DNA of 64,000 bases. It comes from Podarcis bocagei (taxonomy: Eukaryota). Below are positions 9,296 to 49,500 of the stretch, piece after piece. Under the pieces are notes generated by a model, which did no database searches, was not told where the DNA came from, and saw only the letters and a list, made by a program, of their open reading frames with translations. The DNA is taken from assembly GCA_964188305.1 (NCBI GenBank), contig OZ076893.1. One strand, given 5' to 3'. A program made the translations under genes and the position numbers. Numbering within the stretch: the first letter of the stretch is position 1; each line of letters starts with the position of its first letter.

Positions 9296-9999
9296 TGGAA
9301 CCCTCTCATCACTTGCTCCTATCTGATGCAATGGCATAATATCATGCCTGTAAAAGTGGTGACATAAGGATAAACACTCTCACTGGAGACCATAGGCAGT
9401 CACAGACAGCCACCCACCCCTCATCTCTCCTCATAGCCAAATCAGAAAATAGGATTCTTGCTAACTCTATAGCCAATCATGGTATACAACAAGACTCAGT
9501 CAAGTGACAGATGCATCTTCTATCAAGGAATAGGATGACACCACTCTTTTCTCATTTGCATAGAACCCAGAGTACATTAGTGGGTAATTATGAAAAAAGA
9601 CACTTTCTCCAAACTGCCAAGGTTCACAACGAAGTGGAAAGTGTAAACACTTGTTTTCTCAAAACCCATACAGGTGTCCTATCTCAGGATTCCAGTGAAG
9701 CCTTGAAACAGGAGTTGGATTGAGGGATGGGACAGATGCCCCCATGGCCAGTGGAGGCCATTCCCCTTCCTGGCTCCTCATGGAGCTTCTTCCTCTCGGG
9801 GTTCTAGCAGGATCTTGGGAAGGGCTGGAGGGCTCTGTAAAAGGACTGGTCAGTCTCTCTCTTGCCTCATGTACAGATTGTTGAACTTTAGGCTAGTGAT
9901 TGCTGTACCAGCATTAACTCTGGTTTAGCAGCTACCTGTGCTACCAGTACCATGGGATTACCAGTCACGGTGGTGACTGGAAGTTTCCCTGTTGGCATT

Positions 10000-30665: not shown

Positions 30666-31174
30666 CAGTGGTACCTCAGGTTACATACGCTTCAGGTTAC
30701 ATACACTTCAGGTTACATACGCTTCAGGTTACAGACTCCTCTAACCCAGAAATAGTGCCTCAAGTTAAGAACTTTGCTTCAGGATGAGAACAGAAATTGT
30801 GCTCTGGTGGCGCAGCAGCAGCAGGAGACCCCATTAGGTAAAGTGGTGCTTCAGGTTAAGAACAGTTTCAGGTTAAGAATGGACCTCTGGAATGAATTAA
30901 GTACTTAACCCGAGAGCCAGTGTGGTGTGGTGGTTAAGAGCGGTAGTCACGTAATCTGGGAAACTGGGTTCGTGTCTCCGCTCCTCCACATGCAGCTGCT
31001 GGGTGACCTTGGGCCAGTCACACTTCCTTGAAGTCTCTCAGCCCCACTCACCTCACAGAGTGTTTGTTGTGGGGGAGGAAGGGAAAGGAGAATGTTAGCC
31101 GCTTTGAGACTCCTGAAGGGGAGTGAAAGGCGGGATATCAAATCCAAACTCTTCTTCTTCTTCTTCTACCACTG
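30666..31174. mobile_element. Tc1/mariner MITE (CAGTGGTACC family), copy 3, right TIR split by a SINE
   Basis: TA TSDs (30664-65, 31175-76); right TIR aacccgag|...|taccactg. Confidence 0.9.
30912..31167 (+). mobile_element. tRNA-derived SINE, Squam3-type with (CTT)n tail
   Basis: A-box-like gtggtgtggtggtt, B-box-like ggttcgtgtc, CORE-like gctgggtgaccttgggccagtc, L2-like 3' end, CTT tail; near-identical to the copy at 31450. Confidence 0.88.
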
Positions 31175-31449
31175 TATTTGGAGGAAGCAGAACTGTAGCA
31201 GAACAGAAACAACACTGACCGTGACAAAGGTTGGAATGAAAATTGCTGCCTTTTTATATCCCTATTGGTGGTGGAGAACTCAATGCATTACATAGTAGGG
31301 TCACAGGCTTTCTGGGTCTCCCCTGCTCCCCTAAGCGTGTATCCCCAGTGCATGCTCGTGTAAATGTAAATTAAGTAAGTAAGTAAATACATTATAAACC
31401 AACAGAAAACACTATTTTCCTTCCCTTGCCCAGCAATGAGAAGAGGGCA

Positions 31450-31695
31450 GACTGTGTGGTGTAGTGGTTAAGAGCGGTAGTCACGTAATCTGGGTAACCG
31501 GGTTCGCGTCTCCACTCCTCCACATGCAGCTGCTGGGTGACCTTGGGCCAGTCACACTTCTTTGAAGTCTCTCAGCCCCACTCACCTCACAGAGTGTTTG
31601 TTGTGGGGGAGGAAGGGAAAGGAGATTGTTAGCCGCTTTGAGACTCCTGAAGGGGAGTGAAAGGCGGGATATCAAATCCAAACTCTTCTTCTTCT
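31450..31695 (+). mobile_element. tRNA-derived SINE, Squam3-type, second copy
   Basis: Near-identical to 30912-31167; CTT tail. Confidence 0.88.
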
Positions 31696-31933
31696 AAAAC
31701 CACCCAAGGCAATAGTTGGCCAACCAATTCACAGGCTAAATCTGACCTTGTCAAGCTTTACCTTGTGCCATGTAATAGTATTAGAGGAAGGGGCTGTAAT
31801 TCAGCATTTGAACACATACTTTGTATGCCAAAGTTGCCAAGCTCAATCCCTTGGGGGAGTTATTGGTTCGTTTGTTTTGTTCTTGTTTTCATCATGCATT
31901 TTGTGCTTTTATATTGTATTTTTATGTTGTAAA

Positions 31934-32243
31934 TGTTGGTTTCTGCTTTCCTTCAACACGTGCAGCGAAAGGGCTTGTCACGAGACAGGTGTTTACATTC
32001 CACAGTCTGTACTGTTGGAGTTTCTCACGGGAAAGGGAAGCTGGATGTGACGTACACTGGTTTCCTGTTTTTCACTGTGTGATTCTCTCCAAGCTGTCGA
32101 GGAGAGAGGATGCATTTTCTGCTCCGGCAGAGGCAAGATGTCTTTCTGTAATATACCAGCTTTGAACTGTAAATAAAGCAATATAGAGTATGCAGCACGT
32201 ACTCCTCATCCTTCCGCTGGGCACGGGACTCTGCTTTAAATCA
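31934..32243 (+). repeat. 5' LTR
   Basis: Starts TGTTGG; AATAAA at 32172-32177; matches the 3' LTR over 31934-32240; exact 3' end uncertain (CA at 32242-43 or up to 32249). Confidence 0.95.
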
Positions 32244-32249
32244 AAACGT

Positions 32250-32263
32250 GGTTATGGGCCCAG
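32250..32263 (+). promoter_or_regulatory. Primer binding site complementary to nt 26-39 of initiator tRNA-Met (half-tRNA primer)
   Basis: GGTTATGGGCCCAG is the reverse complement of CTGGGCCCATAACC in the tRNA(iMet) anticodon arm; same PBS type as Drosophila copia. Confidence 0.93.
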
Positions 32264-32558
32264 AAGTCGAATCGGAGTGCCGGCAAAGGATCGGAATGCA
32301 GAGGGGCAGATCGGAACGGAATCTTCTCTGCGCGTAAAAGTGATTGATGAGGTATGTGCTACTGCTCCGGGCAGCCTGCCAGCTTCTAGTTAATGGCTTT
32401 ATGGCTGGACTTTGAACTTCAAAAGCCGTTTTGCCGGGAATAGGCAAGAGGCTCCCAGGCACAAGTTACTATGCTGGGGAAATCGAAAGTAACTTTTAAG
32501 TGCGCTTTTGGAATAAAGCAGCTGCAGCAGTGACGCAGCAAGATTTAAAGCAGCATAT

Positions 32559-35414
32559 ATGACGCTGAAGGCTAATGCCAGAGTCATGATGGCCCTTCAG
32601 GATGCTTGTGGGATTCCTAAGCTCAACAAGAAAAATTATGCCGACTGGGTTCTGTATGCAGAGGCAATTCTGCGGAAAGAGGGTTTGTTTAAGGTGATTA
32701 CAGAAACCCCCCCAGTTCCAGTTACAGATGCATGGGAAGCTAAGGATTCCAAAGCAAGGGGAACTCTTACAATGATAGTATCCCCAGAAGAGCTCTGTCT
32801 ATTGCGTGATAAGACCTCAGCCAGAGAAATTTGGGACGCTTTGAGAGAGGCTCACTTAAGGACAGAAGCTGGATCCACTATGTTTTACTTTAACAAGCTG
32901 CATAATATGGCTCTTGCTGAAGGTGGAGATGTGCGTTTACATCTGATGGAGATGCAAAATCTGATACATGAGCTGCAACAGAGAGGACTCAACTTTCCAG
33001 AGGCTGTGTATTCTTTCATGATACTACAATCTTTGGGTTCAGGTTGGGAGTCTGTTGCAACCCAGATTGCTGTGCAGCCAACCGCTCAGCTGACAGTGGA
33101 CTATGTAACTGCCGTGATATTGAATGAAGCAGATCGCCGGGGTGCTAGCTGCATGGGCAAGGGGGAGTCTTCACAGACGTCATCCCATAGTGCAGTGGAA
33201 CCACCAGATGGCGCCAAAGCTTTGAAGGCAGTGAAATGCTACTCATGTGGACGTCTAGGCCATATGAAGAGGGAATGCAAATATCCCAGGGCCAAGACAG
33301 AGCAGCGCAGCGAAAGCTCATCGCGTGGAAAAGGCCGAGGCAAAGGCAAAGGTCCGGTGTCTAGGACAACGCAGCACAAGGCTATGGTTTCACGCTTCAC
33401 TCCAAAGGTTGCAGAGGTCCAGAAAACGTCTAGATCTTTCTTCGTTGTTGATTCAGCGGCAACCCACCACATGTGCAACGATAAGAGACTGTTTGTGTCT
33501 TTTACACCGCAGGAAGGTGCGATTCACCAGGCGGATGACCACACTATTCCCAGTAAAGGTTACGGAACTGTTGTTCTTCACAGTTTGGACTTATCGATAC
33601 AGAATGTGCTTTACGTGCCAGACACCAAACATAATCTGCTCAGCGTTGGACAGTTGAATGAGCGGAACATTGACGTGTCCTTCAAGAACAAGAAGTGCAT
33701 CATCACAAAGAAAAATGATTATGTATTGCATGCTGAATATGTTGATCGTTTGTTTGTTTTGTATTATGATGATGTTGAAAAGGATGACACTTGTTGCATT
33801 GCAGGTTCTAACAAAAGTTTGCATGCAGAATGTATTCATGATTTTCATAGAAAATTTGGTCATTTGCATTTTGAGGCAGTATCTAAAATGCCTGCCTTGG
33901 TTGAAGGTATGACTATTAAACCCTGCAAGTACCACATGAAGTGCAAAGCATGCGCAGCAAACAAGGTGAAAATGGCTGCGAAAGGTAAGGTGTCTAGTAG
34001 GCAAGCTACGGAACCATACCAGGTTGTTCATGCTGATTTGGTTGGACCACTAGCGCCCTCTTTGGGTGGAAATAGGTACTTCATGGTTCTCATTGATGCA
34101 TTTTCTAGATATATTTTTGTGTACAATCTCAAGCAGAAATCAGAGGCTTTTCCTAGGTTCAAGGAATTCTGTGCTTGGTTGGAAAATGTGCATGGTAAGA
34201 AGATAAAGACTCTTTTCAGTGATCGCGGGGGAGAGTTCACTTCTCAGCAGTTTGAAGCTTTTCTGACTGAGAAAGGAATTCAACACGATTTGTCTAGTCC
34301 TCGCTCGCCATGGCAGAATGGACTTGCGGAACGGGCAAATCAGACATTGCTTCAAGGGTTAAAAACCTTGCTGCATGATGCCAATCTTCCAGAGAGTTAT
34401 TGGGCTGAATCTCTCTCGTGTTTTGTTTACAGTTACAATCGCAGGTTATCTTCAGCGATTGGTTGTACCCCCTATGAGAAGATGTTTGGCAAGAAGCCAT
34501 ACATCAAACACATGAAAATTTTTGGTTCTGACATGTGGGTTCATTCACCACAAAGCTCCAAGTTAGGCAAGCGTGGATTGCATGGTATCTTTCTAGGTTA
34601 TCAGAAAGGGTCTTACAGAATAATGATGACTGACTCTAAGACAATTAAGCTCACGAGAAGTGTTGAGTACAATGCAAAGTGGGGGGAGAATGTGGGAATT
34701 TTCCAATGTTATCCTGATGACAGTGATGAGACTGAGGATAAGAAACAACAGCAACCCACACCCACTGATGAAGGTTCTGATTCTGAGTCTGAATCTGAAT
34801 CAGATACTTCAGAGGATTTCAAGAGTGCGAAAGCCTCTATGCGACCCTCTGAAAGCTCTGATCAAGAATTGGAGGAACCATTGTTCAGAATAGGTCGTTT
34901 TTCTCCCAAGAAGGAAGAGGAGAGTGTTGAAGACTTAAGGCTAATTCGTAGGTCACAGAGAGCCACAAAAGGCAAACCTCCAAAGAGATTTGCTGATGAG
35001 TTTGCTACGATAGCAGTAACAGCTGTTAAAAGCTCCAAGAAGGTATTTGAACCTTCAAGTTTCCAAGAAATCCAGGGTTTGGATTCAAAGGAAGCTGAGC
35101 CATGGTTAAATGCCATGAAGGCTGAGCTTGATTCCTTAGAAAGGAACAAAACATGGGAGCTAGTTCCAGTAGTTCCAGGAATGAAACTGCTTGGAAGCAA
35201 ATGGGTCTTCAAAGCGAAGACAGATCAAAATGGCAAGATAGTCAGACACAAAGCCAGATTGGTAGCCAGAGGTTTTGCGCAGGTACCAGGTGAAGACTAT
35301 CACGAGACCTACTCACCCACAGTGAGATATGAGAGCATTAGGCTTATGCTCAAGCTAGCTGCAGAGGAAAATCTACACATTAGTCACCATGATATTAATA
35401 CAGCTTTTCTGTAA
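32559..35414 (+). CDS. gag-pol: Copia Gag-Pol polyprotein, N-terminal part (Gag, zinc knuckle, protease, integrase, start of RT), ending at a premature TAA
   Basis: IPKLNKKNYADW (Gag start); CYSCGRLGHMKREC (CCHC); VVDSAATHHM (protease); HRKFGH...CKAC (HHCC); VHADLVGP, SDRGGEF, QNGLAER (DDE); KARLVARGF (RT). True start may be ATG 32586 or 32589. Confidence 0.95.
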   Translation: MTLKANARVMMALQDACGIPKLNKKNYADWVLYAEAILRKEGLFKVITETPPVPVTDAWEAKDSKARGTLTMIVSPEELCLLRDKTSAREIWDALREAHLRTEAGSTMFYFNKLHNMALAEGGDVRLHLMEMQNLIHELQQRGLNFPEAVYSFMILQSLGSGWESVATQIAVQPTAQLTVDYVTAVILNEADRRGASCMGKGESSQTSSHSAVEPPDGAKALKAVKCYSCGRLGHMKRECKYPRAKTEQRSESSSRGKGRGKGKGPVSRTTQHKAMVSRFTPKVAEVQKTSRSFFVVDSAATHHMCNDKRLFVSFTPQEGAIHQADDHTIPSKGYGTVVLHSLDLSIQNVLYVPDTKHNLLSVGQLNERNIDVSFKNKKCIITKKNDYVLHAEYVDRLFVLYYDDVEKDDTCCIAGSNKSLHAECIHDFHRKFGHLHFEAVSKMPALVEGMTIKPCKYHMKCKACAANKVKMAAKGKVSSRQATEPYQVVHADLVGPLAPSLGGNRYFMVLIDAFSRYIFVYNLKQKSEAFPRFKEFCAWLENVHGKKIKTLFSDRGGEFTSQQFEAFLTEKGIQHDLSSPRSPWQNGLAERANQTLLQGLKTLLHDANLPESYWAESLSCFVYSYNRRLSSAIGCTPYEKMFGKKPYIKHMKIFGSDMWVHSPQSSKLGKRGLHGIFLGYQKGSYRIMMTDSKTIKLTRSVEYNAKWGENVGIFQCYPDDSDETEDKKQQQPTPTDEGSDSESESESDTSEDFKSAKASMRPSESSDQELEEPLFRIGRFSPKKEEESVEDLRLIRRSQRATKGKPPKRFADEFATIAVTAVKSSKKVFEPSSFQEIQGLDSKEAEPWLNAMKAELDSLERNKTWELVPVVPGMKLLGSKWVFKAKTDQNGKIVRHKARLVARGFAQVPGEDYHETYSPTVRYESIRLMLKLAAEENLHISHHDINTAFL

Positions 35415-36581
35415 GGATCTCTGGATGAATCACTTTATATGCTTCCACCTGATGGCGTACAGGTAAAACAGGGATTTGTTTGTGCTCTGAAGAAATCCCT
35501 TTATGGTCTCAAACAAAGTGCACGGTGTTGGCACACAAAACTCACTGAAGTATTGTTTTCTCTAGGTTTTCAGCAAGGGAAAGCTGATCCATGTGTATTT
35601 GTCAAAGAGGAGGGGCAAAAGAAACTGCATTGTTTGTTTTATGTTGATGATTTATTATTCTTTTGGAAAGATGTCACAATGTACAATAACGCCCTAGCTC
35701 AACTGAAAGAGCATTTTGACATAAAAGATCTTGGTGAGGTAAACAACTACCTATCTCTGGAAATAGAGAAAGATCAAGATGGTAACATTCTAGTACACCA
35801 GTCACGGAAAATTGCTGATGTGTTAAGCAAACTAAACCTGATGGATGCTAACCCTGTAGACACACCGATGACAACAGGTTATCAGGTAGATGACACTGAA
35901 GAAGCATTTTCTGACACTACACTGTACAGAAGTGTGCTAGGCAAGCTAAACTTCATTGCCAGATGTTCAAGACCAGACATTGCTATTAGCTGTAATTTGC
36001 TAAGCAGACAAGTCAACAATCCTACTGTCAAGGATTGGAAAGCTCTGAAACGCATAGCGCGGTATTTGAAAGGCACTATGCATTACAGACTGAGACTTAA
36101 CAATCAGAAGTCTGGTGGTCTTGAGATTTTTGCAGATGCAAGTTTTGGAAGTGACACTACAGACAGGAAAAGTACGTCTGGAGTTTGCTACATGTACAAT
36201 CAGGGACTGTTTGATTGGTCATGCAAGAAGCAAACAACAGTTAGCTTAAGTACTTGTGAAGCTGAACTGAATGCACTGTCTTATTCACTTAAGGATTGTG
36301 AATGGTTAGTACAATTGTGCAAAGATATGAAAATTCCTGTCAAATGTCCAATCCAGGTTTACCAGGACAACAAAGCATGTTTGGCTTTGCTGAAGTCTGA
36401 AGGTTGTAAGCAAAGCACGAAGCACTTGCAATTAAAGTTGCAGCATGCTAGGGAATGTATTCAGAAGGGACTCGTAACGGTGTCCTATATGCCAGGTAAT
36501 GAAATTCCTGCTGATGTATTGTCCAAGATTGTATCAAGGGATCAACACTGTACCTATGTGCAGAAGTTGGGTTTGTACTGA
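35415..36581 (+). pseudogene. pol: In-frame continuation of copia Pol (RT core and RNase H) after the TAA at 35412-35414
   Basis: DINTAFL*GSLDESLYMLPPDG in the same frame; LKKSLYGLKQ, FYVDDLL; RNase H FADASF, TCEAE, YQDNKA, ADVLSK. Confidence 0.93.
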
Positions 36582-36614
36582 TATTGTACAAACACGCTGC
36601 CCAGTGATGTTCAC

Positions 36615-36628
36615 AGAAAGGGGGAGGA
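36615..36628 (+). promoter_or_regulatory. Polypurine tract
   Basis: AGAAAGGGGGAGGA directly before the TG of the 3' LTR. Confidence 0.92.
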
Positions 36629-36935
36629 TGTTGGTTTCTGCTTTCCTTCAACACGTGCAGCGAAAGGGCTTGTCACGAGACAGGTGTTTACATTCCACAG
36701 TCTGTACTGTTGGAGTTTCTCACGGGAAAGGGAAGCTGGATGTGACGTACACTGGTTTCCTGTTTTTCACTGTGTGATTCTCTCCAAGCTGTCGAGGAGA
36801 GAGGATGCATTTTCTGCTCCGGCAGAGGCAAGATGTCTTTCTGTAATATACCAGCTTTGAACTGTAAATAAAGCAATATAGAGTATGCAGCACGTACTCC
36901 TCATCCTTCCGCTGGGCACGGGACTCTGCTTTAAA
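36629..36935 (+). repeat. 3' LTR (lacks terminal CA)
   Basis: Identical by eye to 31934-32240; the same 62-aa spurious ORF appears in both LTRs. Confidence 0.95.
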
Positions 36936-37302
36936 AATCTGCCCTGAAATCTACAGATGAGAGGGAGGTTGAGGGGGTTGTCCAAAATAATAATAATAAA
37001 TAAATAAATCTGCAGTGTTTGGGCCAAACTAGACAAATAATCCAGAATGGGCCCCTGCACTTTTAGTTTACTTTTAAAGAGTCATTCATGGAATTTCTAA
37101 TTGCTTGAATGATGTCTCATCTTCTTTTGTGCTTTTTAAAGCACCAATCCAGCCTTCGGTGTCTGCTATTTCTGAGGGTCCCAATGTAAAGTCATACAGC
37201 ATGATGTTTTTCCCAGAAAGCTGTTATCAGTCTTGTTCCATTGTTTTGGTGCCAAGAACATGAAACACAAATTGCTCACACAGCATCATCACTATGAATT
37301 TC

Positions 37303-46505: not shown

Positions 46506-49500
46506 TACGTTAAGTACATTTTAGATCTTTGGCACTAATCACATTTCCCTTTGCTGAGCTCTGGAAGGCTAAAGCATCTAAGGCTTGCTCTCTAGGGATC
46601 CAATGTGGAAACAGTGAACTTTGTAGGAGTATTGCGATGCACACCTCCACCTAGGATTGTGCATCAACTGGTGTGTACCCAGAATAACAAGGCGAACCAT
46701 GATCTCACATTCTCTAGTCCGATGGTGCCATTACCAAGGCATCTAAAGGCAGAACAGGGACCCCCTAAGTGTTTTGAGTCACTCTGTAACTTGAGTTTCC
46801 CCAATAAGTTAAATGCATAATAACCCTTCCCCTTTCCTTTCTGAGAAATAAAACCAAACTGACTGAGCTCAGTGCTGGAGAGGAGAGGGGATGGACAGTG
46901 GAGGGAGCCTTCATTTTGATGGACAGGTCTTGCTTGTAATCACAGTAAATTATTTTTTTGCCGTCACTCCAATCACAATGATTTGGTGAAGCAAGTAAAT
47001 AGAGTTGTTCTTCATGTCCCAAGAATAAATTTTGGTTACACCTTGGTTTGTTTTGAATGAGGCAAACCGTAAGCCCAAGTTAGGACAACATGCTAAGCCA
47101 AACCATGGCTTAGCTCATTGCAGCACAGCAAGACTGAAGGAGGACCAAACTGGAAGCCTGCATGCTAAGGCATAGTTTGGCTTTGCATTATATGCAAACA
47201 GAGCTAAATAATAGTCAAAAGAGGTTCATTACTGGAGCTAGAGTTCCCATCTAGGATTATTTTCAGTCATTTCCTGAATACTAGAGAACTTCACTGCTGA
47301 CAGTCACAATATCTCCCAAATAACACATAACCCAGAGAAATGAATCATTCTGTTGTTTCCTGGATCAGCTTAGCAAAACAGAGGATTTCTTAAATGTTGC
47401 CTTAAAAAAACATATCATCTTCACCTTTGTCTCCCTAAAGATGTTTCTTTCTCTTACAGTATCCATAGTAACTGCAAAGACTTAGGTTAATAGTAAAAAC
47501 ATGGGGGTCAAATGCTAAATTCTGACTCATTCACAGTGCAACACTATACATGTCTACCGTGAATTAAGTTCCATTGTTTTCTTCCTGGCCATTGATAATG
47601 CTAGCTGGGGTTGATGGGAGTTATAATGCAAAATAAAGCATCAGGTTGGAGAAAACCATTTTATAGTTTTCTTAGCTGCCTTGTGGACCCTTAATGGTGT
47701 AAAAGTGGGATGTAATTGTTTTAAATAAATAGTCTTCTTATTTGGGTACCAGAAAAAAGTTTTGTGTTCTTTCAAGGTTATTAGTTTTTATTAACCCATT
47801 ATTAAATACTCATCTGATTGTAATACTGTACTAAAATTCTTGTCGGGGTGGATCTTTATAATTGTTCAGGTGTGGACAAATATGTAGGAAAAACTCAGAG
47901 AGAACAAGGGAATCAGAGTGTCAAAATGTTTTATGTTGTCCAATGCATTTTGGAATTAAGAAATTTCTTCATTGGAGCAAGATATACTTCTTAGCAGCTC
48001 CTCTCTGTAAACATGCCCCAATGGTTCCACCTGAGCTGCTCCTCCATTTTGTTTCTAACCACATTGCAGCCGTACCAGCAAGCTGCATGAAGTTTACTAT
48101 GTCAAATTACAGAGATAATACCCCCCCCCCCCCGTTTTGTGGAGACTTTACTCATCTCCTGTTTTTTCTGGTTTAATGCACACATCTCAAATTACAAGTG
48201 CTGAAATGTGCTGGCTGTACATTTATTTTATTTATTATCAGTACTTACAGGATACTCTGTTACAGAGTTGTCAGGATTGATCACGACAAGAGATAAAGCA
48301 GTTTAAAATTTATACTGCTGTTTCTTCTGGAATGGTGGTTTTTGCCTGTTCAAACAATACAACAGGCCTGAAGATAGTCTTTTACACACTGTGTTAGATT
48401 AAGATATCAGAAAAGAAACAGCATTTTATTTTAAGCCATGGAACATAAGGTATATAAAGTGCCTTGAACAAAGAGGATTTTATCTGTTTGTACAATATTA
48501 CACCAAACAGTACACAGCTCAGGTTATATATGATGTACAGCAGTCTTTGTGGCTCCTTGAGAGCTTTTAATTGAAAGACCTACTTTTCAAAAGAGTAATT
48601 GCTTGCTACCCCAGGAATTCAAATTGAATTTAAAGGAAATGTTTTCCTAGATGAACATTTAACACCCAAACTTGGAAAAAAGATGGTTAACTGTAGGGCT
48701 TTCAAGGAAGGAAAGAAGCATGTAATTATTTTGTTTTGTGTGAAAGATTAATTTTTTAAAAACCTACTTTCATCGAGAACCCAACATTTGTGAAGAAGAA
48801 TATTTGTTTAAGGTGTGCAAAATTTAGGCTGCTTGCACATTACTGGCTTAAAATGCAGATGTGCCTTTCTTTTTCTCAGTTTGGATCAAAGCTGGTTGGA
48901 AGAAACTCATCAAAACATAGTATTTCATAAGAAGCAGGGTAGATATTGATGTGGCTAATATTGTGTGCACACTGCTTCCCAAACTAGTGGAAGCTCAATG
49001 GATCCAGAGTAAATGGGAGTGTGTCATTGTGGAGATTAAATGTTGACTCTTGAAGATACTTTGGGCCTTTTTGTGTATGCAGGAAAAAAATAACACTCCT
49101 TGTGAAAGTGAATTTTTTTTTACTCTGTTACAGTCTACAGTAAAAGACCTTGTGTTGAGAGGTGGGGAGGAGAGGGTGATCTCACGTAAAAAAGGAACTT
49201 TATTATTCCCTCCCTTAAAACATGTATTTTTAATAGAAAAGAAGGAAATTGTTGGCTGTGCATGGGTAAGTAACAGATATGTTACAATTGCTTAAGTAAG
49301 ACGGTTAATTACATTTTATCACATGGTTAAATGCAATTATAATGCTTAGTTATGACCATCAGGCGAGGCTGAATAAGGCACACTAGCATACCAAACACAA
49401 GGGACTGTATTATTTGGCATCTTGTTTGCTTTTGCCATTCCAGTGTTTCACATTCACTTATGACTGGTTCAGTATGAGGCTTTTAAATACTCAGATACAC

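Follow-up and report, generated by a model that had tools for sequence, protein, structure and literature searches.

The 64-kb stretch of DNA that we analyzed (the window) carries, at positions 31934 to 36935, a Ty1/copia LTR retrotransposon that is a young element of lacertid lizards (Table 1). Its gag, protease, integrase, reverse transcriptase and RNase H follow the Ty1/copia domain order, and a Pfam search returned, in order, Retrotran_gag_2, zf-CCHC, Pol_BBD, rve, SH3_retrovirus and RVT_2. One in-frame stop codon at 35412-35414 splits the polyprotein frame within the reverse transcriptase domain. The direct LTRs, the PBS and the polypurine tract all lie in the window, and the two LTRs are without a difference over 308 nt (31933-32240 versus 36628-36935). 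The best protein match came from Podarcis lilfordi, where we found a copy (L001:22502-27511) that is 96% identical over 5 kb. This copy provided the TG...CA ends, with an LTR that reads TGTTGG...TTTAAATCAACA, and a CTGGT target duplication. The termini TGTTGG...CCAACA are common to Drosophila copia and the family to which the window element belongs, referred to here as fam1.

Since the full LTR terminus is present in the P. lilfordi copy and in sequencing reads, the end of the LTR could be placed 11 nt past block 3, the last of the three U5 blocks considered below. The window copy has an A at 32245, where the other copies have a C. Its 3' LTR ends after TTTAAA, about 6 nt short, and we detected no target duplication at the two borders (36930-36945 and 31929-31933). 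The missing 3' LTR end and the absent duplication may be the result of an aberrant insertion or of a later deletion. Just 5' of the element, we also observed a 247-nt direct repeat (30915-31161 and 31449-31695), the two units of which are 96% identical.

Members of fam1 were present in public sequencing runs of five organisms. Based on the reads of four runs, one per organism, at least four organisms carry the family in high copy number, and read comparison revealed sense-strand RNA in one species. The sense RNA reads were even over U3 and continued through the 3' LTR, so that neither the transcription start nor the poly(A) site could be called from them. ARAGORN detected no tRNA gene in the 64-kb window, and an Rfam search returned nothing relevant.

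Table 1. Positions of the features of the retrotransposon in the window
Feature	Position	Strand	Basis and remarks
5' LTR	31934..32246	+	TGTTGG...TCAAAA here, TCAACA terminus in other copies; comparison with 3' LTR
AATAAA polyadenylation signal	32173..32178	+	Sequence; R/U5 border presumed about 15-25 nt downstream
TATG, possible (weak) remnant complementary to nt 36-33	32189..32192	+	Gapped local alignment with a 4-nt gap
Block 1, CAGCACG	32193..32199	+	Complement of tRNA-iMet nt 28-22; exact; not conserved within the family
Block 2, CTTCCGCTG	32211..32219	+	Complement of nt 21-13 (D loop); exact
Spacer, GGCACGGG	32220..32227	+	Sits where nt 12-9 would pair; GGCACAAGAG in P. lilfordi
Block 3, ACTCTGCT	32228..32235	+	Complement of nt 8-1; exact; terminus corresponds to tRNA 5' end
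CGT spacer between LTR end and PBS	32247..32249	+	Comparison with P. lilfordi
PBS, GGTTATGGGCCCAG	32250..32263	+	Complement of tRNA-iMet nt 39-26; 14/14
Sense tRNA-like stretch over PBS 3' end	32259..32275	+	nt 38-49, then ATCG
gag-PR-IN-RT-RNase H frame	32559..36581	+	ORFs 32559-35414 and 35439-36581 share the frame; Pfam
Polypurine tract, AGAAAGGGGGAGGA	36615..36628	+	Directly abuts the 3' LTR
3' LTR	36629..36935	+	Carries all three blocks; last ~6 nt missing

Complementarity to the initiator tRNA in the PBS and U5

As a reference, we used human initiator tRNA-Met (tRNA-iMet) as printed in PMC8216282, which agrees with the vertebrate sequence that a preliminary description of this DNA had given. 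Numbering of the tRNA is linear throughout, so that nt 39 is standard position 40. The lizard tRNA sequence is inferred from the human one, and exact matches of lizard elements over nt 1-8, 10-39, 42-56 and 50-75 corroborate it. According to the preliminary description, the 5' end of the element contains an AATAAA signal, three blocks complementary to the tRNA and a PBS, and all of these lie where it had placed them. The blocks likewise recur in the 3' LTR (36888-36894, 36906-36914 and 36923-36930), as a consequence of the identity of the two LTRs.

By its complementarity, the PBS is of the half-tRNA (hemivirus) type. As in the hemivirus copias, it complements the initiator tRNA's anticodon stem-loop, with the presumed primer end at nt 39/40; fam1 differs from these elements in having CGT between the LTR and the PBS. 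Half-tRNA priming is known from Drosophila copia, Ty5, 1731 and Osser (PMC1181622, PMC5371799). An insertion of a T behind 32259, within the PBS, is common among copies of the family (GGTTATGGGCTCCAG) and was found in 18/20 RNA reads from organism B and, for organism A, in roughly one-third of the contig depth. Beyond the part of the primer that is bound by the PBS, the segments of the genomic RNA complementary to the primer are blocks 2 and 3 and, in the window copy, block 1. We considered self-priming of the Tf1 type and rejected it, given that U5 and the PBS both complement the tRNA and hence share one sense, and that only 6 nt of U5 (CTGGGC) could pair with the PBS.

The region also includes tRNA sequence in the sense orientation, into which the PBS leads without a gap. 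In P. lilfordi, CCCAGAGGTCGA (L001:22828-22839) is an exact 12-nt match to sense nt 38-49, and the window has an A at 32265. The fam1 leader in this way mimics the 3' strand of the tRNA itself, beginning with the anticodon stem. Far from the element, at 47326-47337, there is another exact 12-nt sense match, to tRNA-iMet nt 33-44 (CATAACCCAGAG), which may be due to chance or to a tRNA-derived repeat. Upstream of block 1, a candidate vestige of an earlier LTR end and PBS, such as a tandem duplication of LTR end, spacer and PBS would leave, seemed suggestive on inspection but was discarded when 896/3000 shuffles reached its score.

Ordered chains of exact blocks totaling 24 nt were found in the two LTRs only, out of approximately 12,800 windows, each 71 nt long, from the two strands of the 64 kb; the best ordered-chain score anywhere else in the 64 kb was 17 or less. 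In gapped local alignment, the U5 match scored 40.5, compared with an average of 16.6 for 2000 shuffles, the best of which scored 30, and in a second test the observed score was reached by 0/1000 shuffles. The preliminary description had named ordered matches that are common in shuffled U5 sequence as evidence against its proposal; no match of the observed score occurred in either set of shuffles. Individual tRNA-matching 7-mers do arise in shuffles about three times per 500 nt, but a chance resemblance has next to no probability when the observed score is unreached by every shuffle and every other window. We conclude that the ordered match to the primer is real and that chance is excluded.

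The two LTRs of the P. lilfordi copy carry blocks 2 and 3 without a change, and no variant is listed for them in the reads of the four runs. Block 1 lies outside any conserved site, and some subfamilies have lost it: it reads TAACACA and TACCACA in the two P. lilfordi LTRs, and 43/44 RNA reads of organism B carry C>T at 32193 and 32196. The spacers at 32205-32210 and 32236-32238 vary no more than the blocks do. Over the 42 nt from 32197 to 32238, about two variants would be expected at the observed density and none is listed, a difference that is not significant. The preliminary description had suggested comparing the conservation of the blocks with that of the intervening U5 bases. In this comparison, block 1 proved variable, and blocks 2 and 3 fared no better than the spacers at the read depth available, in a family so young that blocks and spacers can be compared with little power.

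Primer-derived sequence in related elements

Relatives were collected by two routes, protein similarity and a sequence pattern, of which the former gives an unbiased sample, unlike the pattern search that yielded the loci L056 and L026. The closest relative with a similar PBS is family 2 from P. muralis (L006:8933-9334 and 9378-9781), which consists of two young copias in a nested arrangement, the leader of one harboring the other, with amino-acid identities of 58-67% and 77%. Its PBS-like sequence GGTTTCGGGCCCAG is two positions off the half-tRNA PBS, and no complement of nt 1-25 was found in its U5. A hairpin in the U5 of family 2 includes 15 nt of sense tRNA-iMet (nt 42-56), the score of which was matched by 0/2000 shuffles. 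In family 3 (L006:27600-27990 and 30773-31165, minus strand), U5 contains a 17-nt exact match to sense nt 10-26 as well as sense nt 65-74, and the PBS is degenerate (GGTCATGGGTG). We note that the sense tRNA 3' end in the U5 of family 3 could give its PBS an apparent complementarity to its own LTR.

More distant relatives, with approximately 30% identity (L002, L003 and L106), carry a half-tRNA PBS directly at the LTR end and nothing more. In total, a U5 complement of the primer was absent from family 2, family 3, L002, L105 and L106, indicating that such a site is not needed for half-tRNA priming generally. No initiator-tRNA PBS was seen in L103 and L104. In L004, the closest other family, the contig begins within the leader and therefore covers the element from downstream of its PBS and U5. 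A protein search with gag only returned one fragment. Within the LTR of L002, a stretch at L002:4199-4224 resembles the complement of the tRNA-iMet T arm, with a score reached by 1/1000 shuffles.

Three of the relatives found by protein similarity carry long copies of primer sequence close to the PBS. In L105, the host of which is probably an arthropod, the LTR end is followed by a contiguous 30-nt complement of nt 39-10 (L105:4282-4311), which matches the human tRNA at 29/30 positions (the single mismatch falls at nt 16) and comes to an end just short of nt 9. L005 (L005:468-520) has the LTR end TTAAATCAACA in common with fam1, but its PBS TGGTAGCAGAGG corresponds to the tRNA 3' end, showing that the type of PBS has changed within the clade. 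After this PBS comes a complement of the T arm, such that nt 75-51 are covered in all, and 0/3000 shuffles reached the score. At L007:9675-9721, TGGTAGCAGAGGATGGTT, an 18-nt PBS for the tRNA 3' end, is followed by an 11-nt insertion and then by the complement of nt 62-40. The copy in L007 spans nt 75-40 and stops exactly at nt 40, again with a score reached by 0/3000 shuffles. From this end point, the primer of L007 may be the 3' tRNA half, the stop at nt 40 being the partner of the cut at nt 39 that defines the half-tRNA. Judging from these alignments, primer-derived sequence beyond the working PBS is common in the group and occurs in both orientations. Possible homology of U5 across fam1, family 2 and L005 was also examined and not accepted: a MAFFT alignment was suggestive, and blastn was significant only at the LTR end and PBS.

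For the pattern search, metagenome contigs were scanned with a 19-base pattern in which block 3 was placed 5-25 nt upstream of the PBS. The scan gave 65 matches, about the number that we estimate for chance, and most of them fell in apparent bacterial coding sequence. One of the 65, L056, is a true copia, with 25% and 36% amino-acid identity to the two fam1 ORFs. Its U5 reads CTTCCGC-G-GTCACTCTGCT and agrees at 18/21 positions with the complement of nt 21-1. This U5 copy is followed by 21 nt that hold the LTR terminus and then by a PBS for nt 39-24. Given that block 3 was required by the pattern, only the extension beyond it counts as independent in L056 and L026; L056 has ten further matching bases there, and L026 shows a weaker version of the two-part layout. 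The U5 copies of fam1 and L056 keep nt 1-21, while the part corresponding to nt 22-39, which would compete with the PBS, is absent from them or decayed; L026 shows this less clearly. On this sequence evidence, at least one lineage unrelated to fam1, that of L056, shows the two-part layout as well. A search of a viral_contigs sample for half-tRNA elements gave 30 matches, none of them a copia. As a separate observation, the gag frame of L056 (L056:159-240) seems to begin at an ATG inside the PBS (GGTT-ATG-GGC), which is the complement of the initiator anticodon.

Origin and possible role of the U5 stretch

The U5 stretch is likely to be a captured, reverse-transcribed copy of the primer. Under this reading, 32189-32235 would derive from the primer of the element itself (the 39-nt 5' half of initiator tRNA-Met) as a DNA copy, now degraded, that was produced when reverse transcriptase copied the primer to its 5' end or switched template onto it. 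In support of a templated origin, the blocks follow the tRNA strictly in order and end exactly at nt 1, and L105, L007 and L005 carry long copies that are clearly templated. We take it as shown that the sequence comes from the tRNA and that primer copies of this kind exist in relatives. Mature tRNA carries m1G9 and m2G10, and the fam1 copy breaks at nt 9-12, at the site of these two modifications, which would fit the copying of a modified tRNA. The pieces of tRNA in the sense strand, as found in family 2, family 3 and the fam1 leader, fit template switching in either strand, as it could occur while the minus strand is made. Such pieces cannot be clamps, so that a reading of U5 purely as a clamp leaves them unexplained. 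An origin from a reverse-transcribed primer copy was one of two possibilities raised in the preliminary description, and the copies near the PBS in L105, L007, L005 and L056 have strengthened it. Among known processes, a close one is the read-through of plus-strand strong-stop synthesis, in which reverse transcriptase copies the primer until it is stopped; the copies in L105, L007 and L005 resemble inherited products of this kind. Simple read-through would leave the copy downstream of the PBS, as in L105; the copies of fam1 and L056, located upstream and within the LTR, would have needed a further step. A duplication of the LTR end, spacer and PBS after read-through would fit as the route, but the remnant that it predicts did not reach significance.

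What the stretch does at present is a separate matter. The idea that U5 contains a working second docking site for the primer is tentative and, in our judgment, falls slightly short of an even call. In the proposed complex, block 2 of the genomic RNA would pair with nt 13-21, block 3 with nt 1-8 and the PBS with nt 26-39. Blocks 2 and 3 would form a single helix with an internal loop, and the PBS helix would close a ring through linkers of 14 nt and 4 nt, a geometry that is feasible by our estimate. As nt 1-8 become accessible only when the tRNA is cleaved into halves, the U5 site would favor the 5' half over the intact tRNA. Co-folding against shuffled U5, as proposed in the preliminary description, came out in favor of such pairing: the predicted gain with nt 1-25 was -25 kcal/mol, compared with -7.9 +/- 3.3 kcal/mol for the shuffled controls (minimum, -17). 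The earlier suggestion that U5 clamps the primer is possible in view of the strong predicted pairing and the recurrence of the layout in L056, perhaps also in L026; the lack of conservation of block 1, the similar conservation of blocks and spacers at the depth available and the lack of such a site in the sister family 2 and in most other half-tRNA copias speak against it. Taken as a whole, a captured primer copy that was possibly retained as a second docking site is a reading for which we see belief and doubt as evenly matched.

The alternative that survives best is that the captured copy has no present role and is a neutral fossil, still intact through the youth of the family or through some other constraint on U5, for instance the binding of integrase close to the LTR end, downstream signals for polyadenylation or a stem formed by U5 and the leader. 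This would account for the patchy distribution of the U5 complement among half-tRNA copias, for the decay of block 1, for spacers as constant as the blocks in an element whose LTRs are 100% identical, and for the sense-strand tRNA pieces elsewhere, which have no capacity to act as clamps. It is less well suited to explain why fam1 and L056, and less clearly L026, share the layout of nt 1-21 plus PBS with nt 22-39 lost, or why 17 block positions are perfect although, around them, 11 nt have been inserted and the segment for nt 9-12 has been replaced. In the predicted minimum free energy (MFE) fold of the free leader, 32208-32224 pairs with 32281-32296, which takes in block 2, and the constancy of block 2 could on this model serve a U5-leader stem instead of the primer. 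Altogether, we regard a neutral fossil as possible but doubtful.

Two further explanations fared worse. The first is that the complementarity was selected without any capture, U5 having evolved base by base, as is assumed for the contacts in HIV and RSV. Contacts of 6-8 nt are known in retroviruses as well as in Ty1 (PMC3592414) and Ty3 (PMC5371799), and the predicted pairing energy in fam1 is strong. However, 24 bases in tRNA order, ending at nt 1 and accompanied by a remnant for nt 36-33, look templated, and the contiguous primer copies of 25-36 nt in the relatives clearly are, which makes this explanation improbable. The second supposes an RNA structure unrelated to the primer, in which the stretch would be one strand of a U5-leader or U5 hairpin, or a tRNA mimic, and its likeness to the tRNA would be incidental to its present role. 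The pairing of 32208-32224 in the free-leader MFE fold and a small hairpin at 32212-32228 are compatible with this, but the hairpin is broken in P. lilfordi and the ordered tRNA match is left unexplained; we consider such a structure very improbable.

Comparison with known priming systems and implications

In HIV-1 (A-rich loop and primer activation signal) and RSV (U5-TpsiC), the contacts between U5 and the primer lie upstream of the PBS. A U5 motif in these retroviruses pairs with a part of the primer outside the PBS and may be masked by a U5-leader stem. The arrangement in fam1 is similar in that the U5 motif lies upstream of the PBS and could be masked by a predicted U5-leader stem. Retroviral motifs measure 4-8 nt, whereas the complementarity in fam1 amounts to 17-24 nt in two or three blocks and covers nearly the whole free part of the primer. 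The preliminary description had contrasted fam1 with Ty1 and Ty3 on account of the position of its blocks upstream of the PBS; the contrast with Ty1 and Ty3 is fair, but the retroviral contacts are upstream as well. In the literature searched, we found no description of a second U5 site for the 5' part of a half-tRNA, and we know of none described in copia/Ty5-type elements.

The extended PBS of Ty1 includes boxes 0, 1 and 2.1, which pair with tRNA-iMet and are located downstream of the PBS (PMC3592414), and the bipartite PBS of Ty3 has its extra site in U3, at the opposite RNA end (PMC5371799). In all three elements, extra stretches of the genomic RNA pair, or in fam1 are predicted to pair, with tRNA-iMet outside its PBS-bound end and in tRNA order. 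Ty1 and Ty3 bind a full-length tRNA by its 3' end, and their extra sites pair with the T and D arms. By contrast, fam1 would use a 5'-half primer, and its candidate extra site lies upstream in U5 and spans the D loop as well as the 5' strand of the acceptor. The contacts of Ty1 and Ty3 are experimentally required, whereas the fam1 site is known from its sequence and from predicted pairing. What appears to be new here is a candidate site for a tRNA-half primer that lies within the LTR, upstream of the PBS, covers nearly all of the free primer and looks like a fossil of the primer itself.

A broader scheme can be drawn from these elements, in which half-tRNA copias would use a two-part site (a PBS for nt 24/26-39 and a U5 site for nt 1-21 across a loop at the LTR end) that selects or stabilizes the 5' half, and sister lineages in lizards would use the 3' half, nt 40-75, for which L007 gives a hint. 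We think it unlikely that the scheme holds in full, although it deserves consideration. How half-tRNA primers are selected, held and possibly generated has been an open question since copia priming was described. If true, pairing of U5 with the 5' strand of the acceptor, which becomes available only once the tRNA is cleaved, would be a simple selection mechanism, and under the two-part reading the leftover primer copies would be a record of the tRNA fragment used by each lineage. Regardless of function, the long copies in several copia lineages show that the reverse transcriptases of these elements frequently copy their primer in full and that the copies are passed on. Primer copies may thus be used to infer the primer of uncharacterized elements, whether a full tRNA, a 5' half or a 3' half, and they suggest how PBS type and LTR ends shift over time.
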